Assembly (NCBI RefSeq): GCF_026571515.1
Contig: NW_026854566.1
Coordinates: forward strand, 186,001 to 250,000
Source: Ruditapes philippinarum
Lineage: Eukaryota
Reading direction: 5' to 3'
DNA length: 64,000 nucleotides
The notes under the pieces are model-generated. The model was given only the letters and a program-made list of their open reading frames with translations. It had not been told where the DNA came from and ran no database searches. This document shows positions 1 through 61,646 of this stretch, piece after piece (positions within the stretch are counted from its first letter, which is position 1; every line of letters begins with the position of its first letter). The translations under genes and the position numbers were made by a program.

Positions 1-496
1 GTTCGTTTTTTATCTATTTCAGTAAACTTATCCTGTCTGTCCATTTATGATAATTTGTTCGGGATACTACTGAATAATTATAGATAAATGTAAAATTTAT
101 TATAGTCTTATACATTGAACCGATTTGTCAGAAAGGGTTAATTTTTAACTGGATTGACTTTTTTATACGAGTATTTTATGTGATAAATATTTTCGTTTCT
201 GACAGTCTGAAGAAGTTTCTCAATTTTATGATCTATTGAATTTCATCAATGCAGTTCAATAATTTTACAATTTTAATAAAGCACTGTATTCTAACACGTT
301 TTGCACATTGTACCATTTGATTTAATGTATAATAATTCATTCTAATAACACTGATATTGTGGCCTTACCACATCTATTTATAGAATGAACGCGGATACTT
401 CAAACTTGATTCCGAGTGAAAAGTGGCACTTCTAAATTCTTTAATCAGGGAATATTCTTATAATGCATCAGTATAAAACTCTTGTACTCGAACGTT

Positions 497-50978: not shown

Positions 50979-51195
50979 TTAAACTGTCACTTAGTAGAGA
51001 ACACATTCCATAAAAAAATCTAATTCCCATTTATATGGCCAGCAAAATACCAATATGAAAATAGGCGAGTGAATATAAATTGGGACTATGTGTAAAAGGT
51101 TTGTGAAAATAGTGTGCTTAATATAAAGTTTCATTTACATGTAGTATTTTCTGTCGATTATTCAGTATGTATAATTCTCGCGGTATTTATATATA

Positions 51196-51427
51196 TTTGA
51201 GCCGTGTCAAGACAAAACCAACATAGTGCGTTTGCGACCAGCATGGATCCAGACCAGCCTGCGCATCCGCGCAGTCTGATCAGGATCCATGCTGTTCGCT
51301 TACCAACTCTATTACAAGTAGAGAAACTGATAGCGAACAGCATGGATCCTGATCAGATGGGCAGGCTGGTCTGGATCCATGCTGGTCGCAAACCCACAAT
51401 GTTGGTTTTGTCGTGACGCGGCTCATT
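51196..51427. mobile_element. Palindromic MITE (~230 bp fold-back) flanked by TA
   Basis: tgagccgtgtcaagacaaaaccaacat..gcgaccagcatggatccagaccagcctgc..ctgatcaggatccatgctgttcgct is mirrored by agcgaacagcatggatcctgatcag..gcaggctggtctggatccatgctggtcgc..atgttggttttgtcgtgacgcggctca. Confidence 0.9.
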
Positions 51428-51439
51428 TATGTCAAGTCA

Positions 51440-51741: not shown

Positions 51742-52338
51742 AGACTCAGTGTGGCAATACCACGTGACCGTGACGTCATTTTTGGCATTATTTCCAAGAG
51801 AAAAACCGCTCGCTTCAAACAAGAAAATAGCCGTAAGTATTTTATTTCTGCACCAATTTCTATGGGAAATGCACCAGTCTACGGGAAAAAATATTAGCTT
51901 TCCGCGGAATATTAGATCTCAATCAGTAGATGAGCCATTTTATCAAACACTTTGCCTAACCTTAGAAGTTGTTTGTATACGAGCGGACTGCAGTTGCAAG
52001 CAACTTTGTTTTTTGCATTACCTGATCTATACGATGATTTAAAGACCACTTTAACATCAACCGGGAATATCGAAGGCAAAATCCTGCCTAAATATTTCTA
52101 TTTTGTTACAATTTATTGCGTAAATCTTACATTTTCTTCAATTTTCAATTCTGGCACCAGTTCCAAGCCAAAATAAACGGACTACAGTTTAAAGCAGTTT
52201 TCAGAATTGACTGAAAATACGAAGCAGCGTGCATACTTTTACTTTTACATTATTATGTTAACCACCGAAACCAATTTTTATTAACCAAACGACGTTTATT
52301 CTTAAAAGCGTATGCGTTTTTCTTTTTAAAATTTTACT
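51742..52338 (+). repeat. Left terminal inverted repeat (~597 bp)
   Basis: ctcagtgtggcaataccacgtgaccgtgacgtca...ctttttaaaattttact is the reverse complement of 61061-61646, apart from roughly a dozen substitutions and one ~10 bp indel near 51954-51963. Mirror-image ORFs in the ORF track agree. Confidence 0.97.
51761..51838 (+). promoter_or_regulatory. Putative TIR promoter/leader: E-box CACGTG, CRE TGACGTCA and splice donor GTAAGT (51833-51838); mirrored at 61550-61627
   Basis: The motifs are read directly in both TIRs. Both internal genes have an acceptor just before their coding start and no other obvious upstream exon. Confidence 0.5.
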
Positions 52339-53824: not shown

Positions 53825-56006
53825 CTCTCGAAACAATGTCAACAATAGTAGGATTGTTTAATTGAATAAATTGTTGACTTGTTAAGTCGTAAGTTGCTTG
53901 GTAATAATGTAACGGTAATTTTCAATAATAATAAGTCAGCTAATTTCTGCAAATAAATTTGGACAATGAGGGCATCATTTTTATATCTATACTATTCTAC
54001 TTCACCATTAAATCATTTTCAAAAATGTTATTGTCGATAATCATTTTTATTTTCATTTTTAAGTTTTATTTCAAAAAATTTGACTGTGATAATTGAGTGT
54101 ATTTTTGTCAAATCATTATGCTATTTACTTTTTTGTTCACTTCTCATGACGTCCGTGGGCCTCTTTTCATATATGCTAAATAAACATAGAGTCATGAGTA
54201 ATGCAGTATATTTCATGTTTTAATGTTCGTGTCTTTTGTAAGTATAGAATCACTCAATCATTGTAATCATTATTTTATTTGTGTATTGTTTTTTTCCCAT
54301 ATTTTTCAAGAAATTTGACTGTGATCATTACTGTGATTTTAAAGTACTTATGTTATTTATGTTGTTTATTAATTACAATGTATGTAAATAAACATATTAA
54401 AATACTAAAGCTGGCTGGTTTCATATTACTAAAGTATCAGGTATACGAGACACAAATTTCAACAAGAAGATTCTGATGATATTGAAAAATAAAATTGTTC
54501 TACACAAAGAATAAAGCCTTAATGATAATGAAAGTCCATAGTGATCAATTAAAATCACAATGTAATATCATTTAGTTCTACTCATTCAAATCAGACAAAA
54601 ACTATGGCTGCGAGAGTTTATGATATTTTTGTATACGGTTCATACAAGGATAGCACAATTAAGAGCATAATGACTCGATATATACACAATCTAACGAATC
54701 ATACGTTATGCCGTAAAAAAAGTATGACATGTAAACTTTCAATGCTTGCGCGTCATGTGACGTCAATAAATCAAATGACGCCATGGAAATCTCTTCTATA
54801 CTCAATGTAGTTCAACATATCTTTTATCATTTTTATAATGTCAGACTTATCGATCAAATGCTTGTAATTTATCACTCGGGCATATAGGCCTTGATTATAT
54901 TCCTGTTTATTTGACATTTAAACGTGAAAATTTAATAATGACTAAAATTTCGTTTTTTTTTAATAAGCAAAAAATTTTTAAATTACTTTTGCTGCTGGGG
55001 GCTGTAAAAATTAACCCAGAAAAATTTTGATATAATTTTATTACAACTTATATTAAAATATAAATCTAAAACAATATGCACGTTCTGTAAAGAATCAACA
55101 AGCAATCATTTTAACATATTTCAACTCATCTTTGTGTGCATGTTTGGTATATCACGACTCTGTTATCAGTTATTTCTTAATTAAAATATTAATTATACAA
55201 TCTCCACTGTCCCAAAGTCTCTACTGTCTAAGAAAAAACAACAGAATATTTTGATTATATCTTTAAAATGAAGTATGGTGCACTATATCCGTTGAACAAG
55301 AAACTTATTTTGTAACTTGAATGTTAATTCGTATAACATGTCTTTTTTAAGCTTGATGTAGTTTTGACAATTGTTCATGTTATATCGTTCATGTCGAGTC
55401 CGAGCCTAAAAGTTGGCAGCAATTTGCTTTCGTTTCGCCTTGCATTCTCAAATCGGACAGGTAATGTCCCTCTCGCAACCGCATTTCGGTTCCCATCCTG
55501 CCTTGCCTCTTTTACTTTTGATTTTAACCTCCGCCTTCCAGGGTCATCAAATTGGTGATATCTGAAAAAAGCAACAACACAGAGAACAGTTAATATAATA
55601 AATATATATACATGTATTTTGAAATTTTATGGTAACGTCGGAAAATATATTGATGCTGTCAAAGTTTGCTGAAAATGTCGTCTGCCTTTAGAATACTTAG
55701 ATTATAAGATTATAAGATTTCTCAAAATCAGAAAAAGTAATTTCTGTTGGTCAAATGTATATCCATTGTACTGCCTTTTCAAAGTTCATTGTAATGCTGA
55801 AACACCTTAAATAAAATTATTGTTAATTATTACCGCACGTTAGAAGCTTTGCTGTCAGCATTGACATCGTCCGGGTTCATTTCAAGTGATGGTTCTGAAT
55901 TATACTGTCCTACTAGTTGGTATACATTTTTTCTTGAAGTCCGGTACGAGAACGTTCTGAAAGAAGAGAATGGGGAATTCATGACCCAAGAATTCATTAG
56001 GACGAC

Positions 56007-56154
56007 NNNNNNNNNNNNNNNNNNNNNNNNNNNNNNNNNNNNNNNNNNNNNNNNNNNNNNNNNNNNNNNNNNNNNNNNNNNNNNNNNNNNNNNNNNNNNN
56101 NNNNNNNNNNNNNNNNNNNNNNNNNNNNNNNNNNNNNNNNNNNNNNNNNNNNNN
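56007..56154. other. Assembly gap (N run) within a predicted transposase intron (55957-56205)
   Basis: Ns in the sequence; the flanking splice sites join in frame without needing the gap sequence. Confidence 1.
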
Positions 56155-58326
56155 ATTAAAACAATATAGATTTTAAAGATTGAATGAACCTTTAAGTTGC
56201 CATACCTCTTTGGATCCAATCGCATGTGCAGCTTCTCAATCGTCATGTCCATGAATTTTCCGAATTCATCGCATGTGATCGTGCCCTGTCCCCTTCGGTC
56301 AGACAAAGTTACTTCAGAAAAGAAAGTTTCTCCCATCATGCTGGAGAAGGCTCGTACATGGTAAGTTTTACTTCTGACAATGTGGTACAAAGTTCTCTTT
56401 GCATCAATACTAGCGATAATGGCCTCCCATATTTGTGTTGGCCAACCTTGGACATACATACCAGGTGGTGGAAATGAAGAAAAATCTATATGTCCAATTA
56501 ATCTCGATCGTAAAGCTGAACGGAGGCTTATTCGATTTTCGGCTGAAATACCCGGTTCATCTTCCGCTCGCCACCAGTTTCTAATGTCCCGACAAAGCCT
56601 TGCTTCACTTACGTCTCCATTTTTAAGCATTTCGTTTTCAACAGCTTCGCTAAAATGCGTATTTGCCACAGATACTGTCATGGGTTCAGTAATACAATCC
56701 ATCATGCCAATAGATAACGACGTCTTCTTCGATTTTGCTACTTTTCGCCAAGCCTGATTGCTGAATCCATCTAGACCCCCTTTTGCACTTTTTCTTCTCG
56801 TTCTGGTAAGAAAATGGGAGGAATCGATACAACTAACCTCCAGCTGACATCTACTTCTGCTAAAAGATGGGTAATAGAACTGTTCATCTATGTCTTTGTC
56901 AGCAACCGGAAATTGCCGTTTTGGCTCACTTAGTTGCTGTTGCCATTGCTTATATTCGTCTTCCCAGATATATTCTGCGTAAATAATGTTTAAATCTTTC
57001 TTAGTTAAGGATTTATTAAGTTGCTTAAGAGCAAGTTCTGATAATCGTTTAGGTTGATTATGTGTTTTTGTTTTTGTCATTCTTGTTTTATCTGATAGTT
57101 TGTAATGTAAACCTAACAACTTGCATATTTGTCCGACTTTCGCCTCTTTCCTGTCGCTATCTTTCAATTTCAGTTTATGTGTTCTGTTGATGTACCGTAC
57201 TATGATGCGTAATTCGCAGTCACGCAGCTTTCTTAGAGATTTATCATCAACGAAATACGAGGAAATGTCTCTGGATGATAAATTATCCCATGATTGATTT
57301 GCGTTAACAAGTTTATCGACTCGAAATAATGCCAACAATGAAGTATTGTCTGCTTCATTCCACTGAATAATTTTTTCTTCAGTTGACGGTTGAATTGCTA
57401 CTTCTTTCTCAAAATCAATATGAGTCACTTCTGAATCATCTTTGTCTTCTATTTCTTCTGCATTTATTTCCGTGTCTTCTCCTATAAGTACCGGATTCAG
57501 TACATTTGATGCTATCAGATGTTGTTCGTTTCTGTGCATTTTCCTTTCTTCTTTGTGTTGCCACACTGACTGAAATTTTAGGTAAACGCACTCCATTATT
57601 AGTACATATAATTGATTTTGATTCCGACTGATCCTCTGCGTGAACTTCATTTAGGCGTATAACTACTTTGTTCAGGTCAAAAAACTCAGTAATTATATCA
57701 CGCTTTGACTTCTTTTCAACCTTATTCCAAACATCCTTTTGAAGTTGTAATGTCGTCAGTGGGGCTTCATTTTCATCTCTTATTGCAATACAATGCCACT
57801 GGCCATCGAACGATAACGCAGGTACATACAAACCTTTTTCTTTACAACTGTTCATAACACATTCGACAATTTTTCTCATTGTACTTGTATCGAGTGATCC
57901 ACCTTTAGGAAACCAACAGACAGGCACACTATGAGCCCTGTCTTCTTCCCACTTTCTATCTAGGTCACAGCAAAGGAACACGACTGCCTCTGTTGCTGGT
58001 ATTCGTTGCAATTCATAGAAATCGTCATAACACTTTATCAGCTGATTTAACAGAACCTCACATCTTTGAACCGAGTATATCCCATTGTCATAGCTGTTTT
58101 CCGTATCTGGTTGATGTTTTAAAGATTGGAACACACCAATAAACTCCACCATATCTTCTGAACTACAAGCCTTATGAATTTCAGCAGAGAGCAGTCTGCT
58201 TTCTTCCGACAGCTTCGTTGGTCTTTTAGGCTTATCTACATCATACAATTCCACAGCCGCCTTAAATGCCCTTTGGAATAGAGTAGGGTTTCTTTTAATT
58301 CTAAAGCATGTTGAAATGTCCGGACG

Positions 58327-58806
58327 CCAGCTTAAATAGAGAAGTTCTGGTACATTCAATGCCTCAATTTCACTTAAGCATTGTAACAAATACCTTCGTG
58401 GAAAACTTGTGTGGACATCGTAAATTGGACATTTCAATTCAATACCACACGTAGTACAATCTTCTCTCTCTGTTGTTCTAACGCTGCCGTCTGGAGAAAT
58501 TATCATAAATGGTTTTGTGCGTACAGAATCTAGTTCGATGAACCCTTCTTCGTACATTTTTAGACCTGGACACATCATGGGTAACACTTTACCGACCATG
58601 GTAGCAGCGGCGTTGATCTCGTTTTCAGTTCCGTGTAACATTGCAGAGCTGCATTTTGTTGATCTTTCCTTCTCAGGAAGTCCAACCACTTTAACGTCAA
58701 AGTGTTCTTTTTGACTAGTTAAACCATCTAAGCCTAGTGCATTGTACATCGAGCTTCCAGTAATTTTAACTTGTTTTCTTCGATCAAACCACTGTTCAGA
58801 TCTTTG
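58327..58806 (-). CDS. YqaJ / lambda-exonuclease-like PD-(D/E)XK domain within the transposase
   Basis: QRSEQWFDRR..ITGS, AMLHGTENEINA, YEEG, IISPDG, GIELKCP, YLLQ..LLYLSW: hallmark motifs in order, with catalytic D, E and K intact. Confidence 0.92.
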
Positions 58807-61060
58807 TTTTATTTGACGAGTTGTTGGATTTTCTGATTGTTGTTTTATGTCCGTTTCACAATAGTGTTCACTTTTATGCAAGTCTATATCCGTCTTTGTT
58901 ACCACATTAGGTGATTTTCTAAGGCTGCTAATAAAAATAAGCAGTTCATTAATTAACGCCATACTCTCTCTTATGAATGTGTCTTTATCATATATGAATG
59001 CTATCGTTGCACTTATTGCATATACAAACTTGCCATTTTTCCAATCATCCTTTCCTCCCTTTTCAATAAGTTTCTCTTTGGCGTATTCTTTTTTATTCTT
59101 CAAATCTCTAGATGCGCATATGTTTAAGGACACTATTTTATATTTGACTTGATAAAGTGTCAGAAATTTCTTTTCGTTCATCATCCGTTAATTCTGTGCA
59201 TATGTTATCAACTGTGTTCATTTCAGAGAATTTGCACAACAATCTATTTACTGGCATTTTCCTCTCTTCCAAAATACATTTTCGTTCGCATAGCGACAGA
59301 TCCTGCTCAAATCCAAGTAAAATCAACGTCGCCTGACGTTTCCTTTAATCCTCTTTTAAGCTTCTTGCCATAAATGTTAGACAGTATGAAGCATTTGAAT
59401 TCGAGGCTGCAAGGCTTTCCAACATATCTGTAAATATTCCAGGCTGTCTGCCGTTACTGTCTGTTGAAATGTCATATGGAGTGTAAGATGTTAGAATGTC
59501 CTTCCCCCGGCACAGCAAAGTTAATCTCTGAAATCGTAGGATATAAATGCTTCTCTCGGTTGGCCCGTCACACAGAATTTTCCGGGTTTTTTTTTCCCGA
59601 CATAAGTATAAATGACCCCAATAACGATATCCAATTTTCCAAAAAATTTTTGGGATTTTTGAATATTTATTTCAGCGTACTATCTAAAACATTTAAACCT
59701 TTTTAGCCATAAATGTAAGGTTTTTTTCATAGAAATTTGTTTTGCTTCCCAGTTAAAAGAATTAAGGAATTTTTATCCCTTCCCATGCATTATTCAATCA
59801 AACCGGTTAATAGCTTTTTAATTTCTTCAACCAAGGAAGTAATTTTTTCTGTGTTTTTTTAACATCGAATACCGTCACATAGTTTCTTTTCTAAAAACTT
59901 GTTCGAGTTTCAAGTCATCTTCACCAAAATAATCTCTATTTATTTGATCATTCAAAGCTATGTTTTTTGCCGGGATATTTGCAACCGATGTATATAATGT
60001 TCTCCTAGTTCTTTTTGGAAAAGGTGATTTAGACGGCGTTATCTCTGATTCAGATCGTGATTTGGACGATATTCTTTTCACACTTGACCTCTTTGGCGTC
60101 GAGAACTTAACATTTGATGGCGATCGAACAGATGTAAAGGTTTTCGTTGCCGTTCGGGGTGTTTTGGGGGAATACAACTTGTTGACACATGAGGAAAATT
60201 TGACTCTATTATATATCTCATCTTCTGTGCAGATCCACTGGCGGGAAAATTTGATCTTTCTGGTTTCAGTTTTGAAACGATTTCGCCTGTACCGCTTGCC
60301 AAGCGTGAGTTTTGACTTCGGTTTTGTCATCACATGTTAGTACGGCATTTCCCAGTATGTCAACTTCAGTACGATTGCAGCATACTGAAATATAAAATAT
60401 TGTACTGTAAATATTGTATATCTAGCCATAAACTAACTTTAAAAGAAACAAGTCGTATATAAAACTTTTGTAGACAGACATACTTTAAGATCCAATACGC
60501 CCCAAAATACATACGTTCATTTCATTTCTCAAACGACATTTTATTGTTTGTGCTCTTTGATTTTTTTCTAAAACTTTATAACTAAAAAACTTACTGAAGT
60601 ATATACTGCTTCTGATTATTTTTCGTTATAAGTACAGCATACATGTAGTAATATAATAGTTTGTATGGAAGTCTAAATACTTCTTCTTTACATTTGGCTA
60701 CCTTTATTATGAATGATCTCACATGCAAATCTATTTTAATAAGAAAACGTATCTGACATGTTTAAAACTATTCTTTTCACGATTTAAAATGCTTCACCCC
60801 CCTTTCTTAAGAAGATAAATGTTTATTTCTGACGCAAATTATGCCTTTAATTTGATGAAATTCTTTACTGTTTCAGATTTTTCTATGTGATATACTGTTA
60901 TAAATTATTTTTATAATTTACTGAAAAGAAATATAAACATAGAGAAAAATTGAAATGACTTGTGCAATAATAGATTTTGCTTCCATACACAAATAGATTT
61001 TCTATAATTTGTACCATCACAAAAGAGCAAATATAATCTTTGTACATAACTTTCAAAGTT

Positions 61061-61646
61061 AGTAAAATTTTAAAAAGAAAAACGCATACGCTTTTGAGAA
61101 AAAACATCGTTTGGTTAATAAAAATTGGTTTCGGTGGTTAACATAATAATAGGAAGAGAAAGTATGCACGCTGCTTCGTATTTTCAGTCAATTCTGAAAA
61201 CTGCTTTAAACTGTAGTCCGTTTATTTTGGCTTGGAACTGGTGCCAGAATTGAAAATTGAAGAAAATGTAAGATTTACGCAATAAATTGTAACAAAATAG
61301 AAATATTTAGGCAGGACTTTGCCTTCGATATTCCCGGTTGATGTTAAAGTGGTCTTTAAATCATCGTATAGTTCAGGTAATGCAAAAAACAAAGTTGCTT
61401 GCAACTGCAGTCCGCTCGTATACAAACAACTTCTAAAGTGTTTGATAAAATGGCTCATCTACTGATTGAGATCTAATATTCCGCGGAAAGCTAATATTTT
61501 TTCCCGTAGACTGGTGCATTTCCCATAGAAATTGGTGCAGAAATAAAATACTTACGGCTATTTTCTTGTTTGAAGCGAGCGGTTTTTCTCTTGGAAATGA
61601 TGCCAAAAATGACGTCACGGTCACGTGGTATTGCCACACTGAGACT
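61061..61646 (-). repeat. Right terminal inverted repeat (~586 bp)
   Basis: agtaaaattttaaaaag...gacgtcacggtcacgtggtattgccacactgag mirrors 51742-52338. Confidence 0.97.

Follow-up and report, generated by a model that had tools for sequence, protein, structure and literature searches.

A Manila clam transposase family in which a lambda-exonuclease-type nuclease appears to split the RNase H fold

Can the fold that carries the active site of a cut-and-paste transposase also house a complete second nuclease? The question is raised by a 64,000-nucleotide stretch of the genome of the Manila clam, Ruditapes philippinarum (contig NW_026854566.1, positions 186,001 to 250,000; hereafter the window). 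A decayed transposase coding region on its minus strand (55830..60333) carries the motifs of a YqaJ/lambda-exonuclease domain between those of the first and second catalytic Asp (D1 and D2) of an RNase H fold like that of P element and THAP9 transposases. Based on predicted structures, we are confident that in this transposase family the RNase H fold is split in its β1-β2 loop by ~455 residues, which comprise a stalk and a complete lambda-exonuclease-type nuclease. Whether this nuclease resects DNA ends made by the Asp-Asp-Glu (DDE) site of the transposase is, in our analysis, an evenly balanced matter, and the architecture and the mechanism taken together as one statement are somewhat favored.

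In the window copy, all motifs that an earlier sequence-only reading had listed were found on the minus strand (to which all coding coordinates below refer), in the order it gave. An open reading frame (ORF) of 582 aa (57436-59184) contains a helical linker, the YqaJ/lambda-exonuclease domain, a second linker and D2 of the P/THAP9-like RNase H fold, and the exonuclease and D2 do share one uninterrupted ORF, as claimed. The PD-(D/E)xK nuclease domain is intact in the window copy (58210..58809), with the motifs QRSEQW (58789-58806), TGS (58750-58761), HGTENE (58618-58635), SPDG (58486-58497), ELKCP (58426-58440) and LLQCLSE (58369-58389); its catalytic codons are those of the PD Asp (58489-58491), the Glu (58438-58440) and the Lys (58432-58434). 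It is preceded by an ascending helical stalk (58810..59297; three long helices in the structural model described below) and followed by a descending linker of low conservation (16%) and a return helix by which the chain rejoins the RNase H sheet (57997..58209; helix 511-532 in the model). The RNase H fold then continues with β2, β3, α1 and β4 (57796..57996), of which β2 reads ATEAVVFL (57973-57996), β3 SVPVCWF (57910-57930) and β4 LSFDGQW (57796-57816), the last including the D2 codon (57805-57807). A 606-aa ORF in a different frame (55830-57650) holds β5 with CIDSSH (56814..56831), the C/DxxH signature common to P, hAT, Kolobok and MuDR transposases, and GETFF of helix α4 (56319..56333) with the catalytic E codon (56328-56330). 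This ORF is interrupted by a gap of 150 N (56014-56163) inside the C-terminal part of the transposase frame. The region is AT-rich (~30% GC), and the reading frame shifts several times within the N-terminal third (59.1-59.9 kb) and once more between 57436 and 57650.

Ahead of the 582-aa ORF lie PGIFTDML..YCLTF (~59372-59440) and the β1/D1 block YCLTF(D)GKK (59361..59386). D1, which the earlier reading had supplied in brackets, is unreadable in the window copy because its codon is broken by the private loss of 1 nt between 59372 and 59371: the site reads TTT-ATGGCAAGAAG, with one G missing relative to TTT GAT GGC AAG AAG. The latter sequence, encoding TFDGKK, is present in two sibling copies, L013 (contig C7054) and L003 (contig C12529), which are 95-97% identical to the window copy, and the aligned Asp is present throughout the family alignment described below. 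Next comes the conserved GDVD-LLGFE segment (59298..59333), the last canonical P-like element ahead of the insert, which hhalign paired with GDVVELxGF of canonical clam P-like transposases. Private 1-nt insertions in a T-run of this segment (59319-59322) and in an A-run of the stalk (59143-59145) put the D1 block out of the 582-aa ORF. Six siblings (L002, L003, L013, L016, L021 and L029) were 95-97.5% identical to the window copy, with 29-72 gap openings per 3.4-3.9 kb (window 55700-60400). The three sibling indels that were inspected were single-base and all sat at or in short homopolymer runs, for which reason we suspect from the sequence that, besides decay, some of the window-copy frameshifts may be assembly errors.

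The arrangement recurred well beyond this copy. With the 582-aa ORF as query, at least 76 matches were obtained in the Manila clam genome, eight of them intact single ORFs of 1293-1489 aa. These intact paralogs had 27-45% amino acid identity among themselves or with the window ORF; the close siblings were all decayed. The intact ORF at L036 corresponds to the R. philippinarum gene LOC132745056, for which the protein match was 100% identical. The order D1 - YqaJ - D2 - DxxH - E was found in 8/8 intact ORFs, within a shared layout: a MRY..FW..G..LRFMSG block, PGI...xDGKK, GD(I/V)DLWGxE and ~150 helical residues lead to YqaJ; ~100 linker residues, ASExLVFLxSDLDR, PVAY and SFDGQW come after it; and a variable acidic stretch, a helical region, lDxxH and ENFF/ETFF complete the protein. 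The N-termini of four paralogs (L034, L036, L037 and L038) carried a conserved CxYC...HLxxxH motif (C2H2-like; CxxC..HxxxH) at the place where P/THAP9 proteins have their THAP domain; L031, L032 and L035 had another, non-conserved N-terminus, and L033 was without this region. No THAP domain was matched at E<=0.1 in the five intact paralogs scanned.

Homologs in other genomes were sought by word-based and exhaustive profile searches. At E<=1e-30, the profile search of a protein library gave 817 cluster representatives (clustering at 50% identity). The best 150 of 4,564 library matches all fitted a D1-block/YqaJ/D2-block profile as one contiguous stretch, or were fragments thereof. Members were found in the bivalves Mytilus, Mercenaria, Mya, Pinctada, Solemya, Tegillarca and Dreissena, as well as in the gastropod Batillaria, the annelid Owenia and the cephalochordate Branchiostoma (amphioxus). 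Those with a source name were labeled only as uncharacterized, hypothetical or "YqaJ viral recombinase domain-containing". A further search with the post-insert half, in which shorter proteins were admitted, gave fragments of the same family only, and no insert-free close relative was found. Judged from these sequences, the D1 - YqaJ - D2 order, recurring in eight intact ORFs and in the best 150 of 4,564 library matches, is far beyond chance, and the transposase is a member of a large, undescribed P/THAP9-like family. One 1018-aa member (P0015) has an NCBI record assigned to a 'Candidatus Thiodiazotropha sp.' metagenome-assembled genome; its sequence probably comes from the host and was binned together with that of a clam symbiont.

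Where in the fold the nuclease sits was addressed with predicted structures. AlphaFold2 was run on residues 84-1283 of the intact paralog L033 with a 67-sequence alignment (model numbers are L033 residues minus 83) and gave a model with a mean predicted local distance difference test score (pLDDT) of 82 and a predicted template modeling score (pTM) of 0.73. According to DSSP, β1 spans model residues 72-82, with D1 at 78, and is followed by three long stalk helices (104-127, 130-176 and 186-221); these carry the YqaJ domain (~249-500), in agreement with the suggestion of the sequence-only reading that the domain would project on a stalk. After the return helix (511-532), the RNase H fold continues with β2 (538-546), β3 (558-566), α1 (572-588) and β4 (592-598), D2 being residue 599. 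A mostly disordered stretch and a helical domain extend up to ~960, and β5 (987-993), a helical domain (995-1155) and α4 (1156-1168), with E at 1159, complete the core. The top matches in a Foldseek search against the PDB were LHK-Exo, lambda exonuclease and the Drosophila P element transposase. With the last of these (6P5A_A), VIA-align gave a Z of 28.6 and a root-mean-square deviation (rmsd) of 2.7 Å over 320 residues, pairing model residues 40..1198 with chain residues 195..569 and thus covering both sides of the insert. The catalytic triad of the P element transposase is D230, D303 and E531 (PMC7776569), all within the matched range, and the offsets agree at both ends: 35 residues from 195 to 230 vs 38 from 40 to 78, and 38 from 531 to 569 vs 39 from 1159 to 1198. 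Other fold matches to the core were weaker (RAG1, Z 9.7; Hermes, Z 8.2).

A split-chain prediction pointed the same way. The pre-insert piece (model 40-103) and the post-insert core (529-1200) were given to ESMFold2 as separate chains, without an alignment, and scored 0.84 in two runs and 0.81 in a third, while three controls all scored 0.00; at least 92% of contacts were in agreement between runs, and the partner pLDDT was 62-63. In the calibration of this tool, 51 of 78 solved complexes reached the split-chain mark, compared with 2 of 108 mismatched pairs. The best-determined of the predicted contacts place β1 (72-77) between β2 (542-545) and β4 (591-597), the canonical 3-2-1-4-5 strand order, and the β1 interface includes 599 (D2), 994 and 1157-1159 (E). 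The two predictions thus agree in packing FDGKK against SFDG and the E helix, as had been expected. AlphaFold2 and ESMFold2 may both draw on the solved P element structure, and their agreement shows likeness rather than independent proof.

For comparison, a canonical P-like transposase of the clam was modeled as a control, at lower confidence (pLDDT 63); it had β1 at 437-446, a low-confidence loop at 447-489, and then β2, β3, α1 and β4. We assign the insert to the β1-β2 loop because the control has a loop at this place, one that even in ordinary P-like enzymes is long and floppy; the spacing between the two strands is ~455 residues in the family vs ~43 in canonical clam P-like copies. The claim that a second nuclease fills a loop of the RNase H fold is supported, with the refinement that the family is P-like and not a canonical P/THAP9 member. 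In the L033 model, the RNase H fold is also broken at a second place, by ~390 residues between β4 and β5 (L033 ~683-1070, model 600-987; window ~56850-57800), made up of conserved helices, a low-confidence hairpin, a disordered acidic stretch of ~120 residues and a helical domain (model 814-956).

Profile comparisons agreed with a split core. The TNP-like RNase H N-terminal domain PF21787 was matched in 4/5 intact paralogs over profile positions 63-132 only, always after the YqaJ domain, the half-match expected of a split domain. In 30 canonical P/THAP9-like loci of the same genome, positions 2-134 of the profile were contiguous in ~143 residues. Among 34 family members, PF21787 was matched at E<=0.01 in nine, and PF21788 and PF21789 were not seen; one gastropod member has a precomputed PF21787 match. 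The hhalign comparison with canonical clam P-like copies was colinear at D1, β2, D2 and DxxH: AVPxxxL..PGI..xDGKKI..GDIDLWGFE was paired with LPSxxTL..GF..IxDEMSI..GDVVELxGF (hence DGKK with DEM), ASEvLVFL with THxLQFL, GLyvPvvSFDG with GFxVxYTCMDG, and lDxxHlltnxR with MDxSHVxKKIRN. In protein-language-model features, the nearest named clusters to the post-insert part were all TNP-like, and those to the insert were all YqaJ.

The identity of the insert was apparent from sequence profiles and from its predicted fold. PF09588 was matched above its gathering threshold (22 bits) in 4/5 intact paralogs scanned, with 29.6-38.9 bits, and at E<=0.01 in 29/34 family members; no Pfam match was obtained at E<=1 with the window ORF by itself, and single-sequence PDB searches of the window ORFs were also empty. 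A HMMER profile of the family matched LHK-Exo (3SYY; E 9e-4) and lambda exonuclease (1AVQ; E 6e-3) in the PDB, with SPDG, ExKCP, the Q helix and the WxxxR Arg all aligned. The family WxxxR Arg is paired in the hidden Markov model alignment with the Arg of WHKLR in lambda exonuclease, which we take to be R28, the residue that binds the 5'-phosphate. The two exonucleases matched model residues 249/261..457 by VIA-align (Foldseek E 1e-4), and the superposition of the insert on the lambda exonuclease fold had a Z of 15.8-16.1 and an rmsd of 2.5-3.2 Å over 169-185 residues. Cas4 and herpesvirus alkaline nucleases were also among the fold matches. Fold, PD, ExK, Q and 5'-phosphate Arg are thus shared with lambda exonuclease and LHK-Exo; these, however, are free-standing toroidal trimers partnered with an annealing protein, whereas the clam domain sits within a loop of another enzyme. 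No annealase was seen.

Both active sites are conserved across the family, as judged from 67 sequences 22-43% identical to the reference, all of which keep the YqaJ segment. The PD Asp and the Glu and Lys of ExK, whose conservation the earlier reading had put forward as a check, were each present in 67/67, as were D1 and the Trp and Ser of the N-terminal YqaJ motif; the Arg aligned with the 5'-phosphate Arg of lambda exonuclease was present in 65/67. D2 was found in 64/67, the Asp and His of DxxH in 66/67 each, and E in 63 of the 64 sequences covering its position. Mean pairwise identity was 34% in YqaJ and 34-35% in the three RNase H pieces, and fell to 16-21% in the stalks and 13% in the variable stretch. 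Pairwise distances in YqaJ and in the transposase core co-varied (Mantel r 0.66; reached by 0/999 permutations), as expected for one old capture inherited with the core. The YqaJ segment reads in frame and diverges in step with the core, and it shows no insertion borders of its own, in line with the architecture as first read.

The coding region lies in a dead copy of a cut-and-paste DNA transposon of ~9.9 kb with long terminal inverted repeats (TIRs). The left TIR (51747..52338, plus strand; terminus CAGTGTGGCAATACC...) and the right TIR (61061..61641, minus strand) are ~600 bp long, and the two arms are 97-99% complementary. The element termini read CAGTGTGG, and the terminal 22-mer is present at the two element ends only. 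A 5-bp direct repeat, AGACT, flanks the element on the left (51742..51746) and on the right (61642..61646) and is a putative target-site duplication (TSD). The terminus of this one copy looks more hAT-like than P-like. No TIR pairs were seen in the 9.5-9.9-kb loci of seven intact paralogs, which are too short on the 3' side to tell.

What might such a nuclease do? DDE cleavage leaves 5'-phosphates, and P elements carry 17-nt 3' tails. In the mechanism considered here, the DDE site would cut the element ends to give 3'-OH and 5'-phosphate ends. Lambda exonuclease digests the 5'-ended strand at double-stranded DNA ends (PMC3424549). The tethered exonuclease, which keeps the 5'-phosphate Arg, could load in cis on the 5'-phosphate ends and digest them in the 5'->3' direction, a nuclease held on a stalk beside the DDE site being placed to resect the ends made there. 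The products would be new or longer 3' single-strand tails, whether at the element ends, at the donor flanks or at both, and tails at the donor break would favor homology-directed gap repair from the sister chromatid and hence a net gain in copies.

Several observations weigh against the architecture or the mechanism. The window copy is non-functional: its frame changes at least four times, and it contains an N gap. The PF21787 matches of the intact paralogs scored 18-21 bits, below the threshold of 24.6; the hhalign matches to canonical clam P-like copies, obtained at full length or with family blocks, were weak (P 0.03-0.6) and, though colinear, not significant by themselves; and the HMMER family profile did not match 6P5A in the PDB. 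Support for P homology from sequence by itself is weak, and the case rests on predicted structure and colinear motifs. The convergence of D1, D2 and E on one site is inferred from the superposition and the list of predicted contacts. Lambda exonuclease is a toroidal trimer, at odds with the dimer or tetramer of P transposase, and the AGACT duplication, read in a single copy, is 5 bp long vs 8 bp in P elements.

The rival that survives best, which we nevertheless consider unlikely, holds that the PD-(D/E)xK domain is a TnsA-like second-strand endonuclease that cuts the 5' non-transferred strand, so that the DDE site would cut and join the 3' ends only. Cas4 and the herpesvirus alkaline nucleases, which were among the fold matches, are known for endonuclease activity. 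TnsA is itself a PD-(D/E)xK enzyme active in transposition (PMC3424549). The 5-bp TSD and the CAGTG termini are unlike those of P elements, and the cleavage chemistry may accordingly differ too. However, the closest relatives of the domain in sequence and fold, lambda exonuclease and LHK-Exo, are true 5'->3' exonucleases, and the Arg of 5'-phosphate type kept in 65/67 sequences points to loading on an existing 5'-phosphate end. Moreover, P transposase cuts both strands alone (PMC7776569).

It is considerably less probable that the YqaJ domain is no longer a nuclease and serves instead as a DNA clamp, an oligomerization module or a regulatory module. Domains of the lambda-exonuclease type form rings, and in the model a long stalk keeps YqaJ apart from the DDE site, as such a role would allow. 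Yet the invariance of the catalytic Asp, Glu and Lys at only 22-43% identity, together with a nearly invariant Q, W, TGS and Glu of GTENE, is the pattern that selection on catalysis would produce.

A third rival, highly improbable in our judgment, accepts both enzymes and disputes their nesting: the exonuclease would lie N-terminal to a complete RNase H fold, with an Asp of the SDLDR turn as the true D1 and DGKK in a DNA-binding region. The SDLDR turn is conserved, and it precedes D2 by 52-54 residues, a spacing known from retroviral integrases. Against this, only two strands follow the insert before α1, and the PF21787 matches there start at profile position 63. The 6P5A superposition begins as early as model residue 40, hhalign pairs DGKK with DEM, and the split-chain runs place the DGKK strand between β2 and β4 with D2 and E in the interface. 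That the whole is a one-off nested insertion or an assembly or gene-model artifact, as the frameshifted window copy and the many 1-nt indels between siblings could suggest, has next to no probability in view of eight intact single ORFs and hundreds of homologs in other phyla with the same order, of a segment always in frame and of the lack of any internal TIR or border; the one-off insertion is ruled out by the eight clam ORFs and the best 150 of 4,564 library matches.

How, then, does a transposase with the nuclease within its RNase H fold compare with known systems? P element transposase is the best structural match by far (320 of ~375 residues), and P/THAP9 enzymes share the RNase H DDE core, an insertion domain between β5 and α4, and the DxxH and ENFF-type motifs. 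They differ in their contiguous β1-β2-β3-α1-β4 half-domain, which in the clam family is broken by the ~455 residues, and in lacking the second insert of ~390 residues between β4 and β5; the clam family in turn has no Pfam THAP match and in some paralogs the C2H2-like N-terminus. P elements also have their 8-bp TSD, in contrast to the ~600-bp TIRs, CAGTG termini and 5-bp TSD of the window element (one copy). The insertion domains of P, Hermes, Tn5 and RAG1 all lie between β5 and α4 (PMC7776569). What is new is that the β1-β2 loop can also take up a whole second enzyme, lambda-exonuclease-like nucleases being already known elsewhere in cut-and-paste elements.

One such case is KolobokE, in which a DDE transposase and a lambda-exonuclease-like PD-(D/E)xK nuclease occur in one protein, molluscs included (Kojima and Bao 2022, PMC9587614). 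In KolobokE, the nuclease follows the complete transposase domain (PMC9587614), whereas in the clam family it lies between D1 and D2, and the KolobokE signatures VADGSGW, IADGDSS and CTNH (supplementary alignment, PMC9587614) differ from DGKK, SFDGQW and DxxH. Kolobok elements have TTAA TSDs, RR..YY termini and zinc fingers, which are absent from the clam family and the window element, and no conserved Cys cluster was seen between DxxH and E in the clam family alignments. Exonuclease position, AGACT flanks, motifs and the missing Cys cluster together rule out membership in KolobokE. ISL2EU elements are likewise cut-and-paste elements with an accessory YqaJ exonuclease, encoded as a separate second ORF beside a PIF/Harbinger-like transposase with a THAP domain (PMC4482050, PMC4122938); membership is ruled out by the single ORF and P-like core of the clam family. 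In Tn7, a DDE enzyme (TnsB) and a PD-(D/E)xK nuclease (TnsA) similarly share the two strands at transposon ends, but the system is bacterial, uses two polypeptides, and its TnsA is restriction-endonuclease-like and not of the lambda-exonuclease type. No report of YqaJ joined with P/THAP9, or of a nuclease inside a transposase RNase H fold, was found in the full-text-searchable literature, outside which Repbase Reports and subscription journals lie.

These comparisons allow a broader proposal, which we advance only tentatively. The family may represent an undescribed cut-and-paste chemistry, in which DDE site and exonuclease, built into one fold, would work one after the other on the same DNA end, replacing or extending the P-type staggered second-strand cut and committing the donor break to homologous gap repair; the coupling of a transposase to a 5'->3' exonuclease would then have arisen independently at least three times (in this clam family, KolobokE and ISL2EU) as a general route to copy gain. 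Expansions of YqaJ genes in bivalves have been interpreted as viral relics or endogenous viral elements (PMC7826175). Part of these "YqaJ viral recombinase" expansions is re-explained here, at least some of them being transposases. The family also offers a natural single-chain system for the coupling of transposases to end resection and repair-pathway choice, and, should it prove active, a compact transposase that brings its own resection activity might be of interest to developers of genome-engineering tools.

Two further observations concern the surroundings of the element ends. The ~600-bp TIR had 873 first-look candidates in the genome, and most of the 40 that were scored were ~80% identical over query positions 5-541/551. 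Such copies aligned only from query position 5-6 onward, and from their sequence they look like a high-copy, probably non-autonomous relative (~540 bp) of the window element. Just outside the left element end, at 51193-51430, lies a cluster of short hairpin or palindromic repeats with arms of 24-82 nt that are 78-100% complementary.

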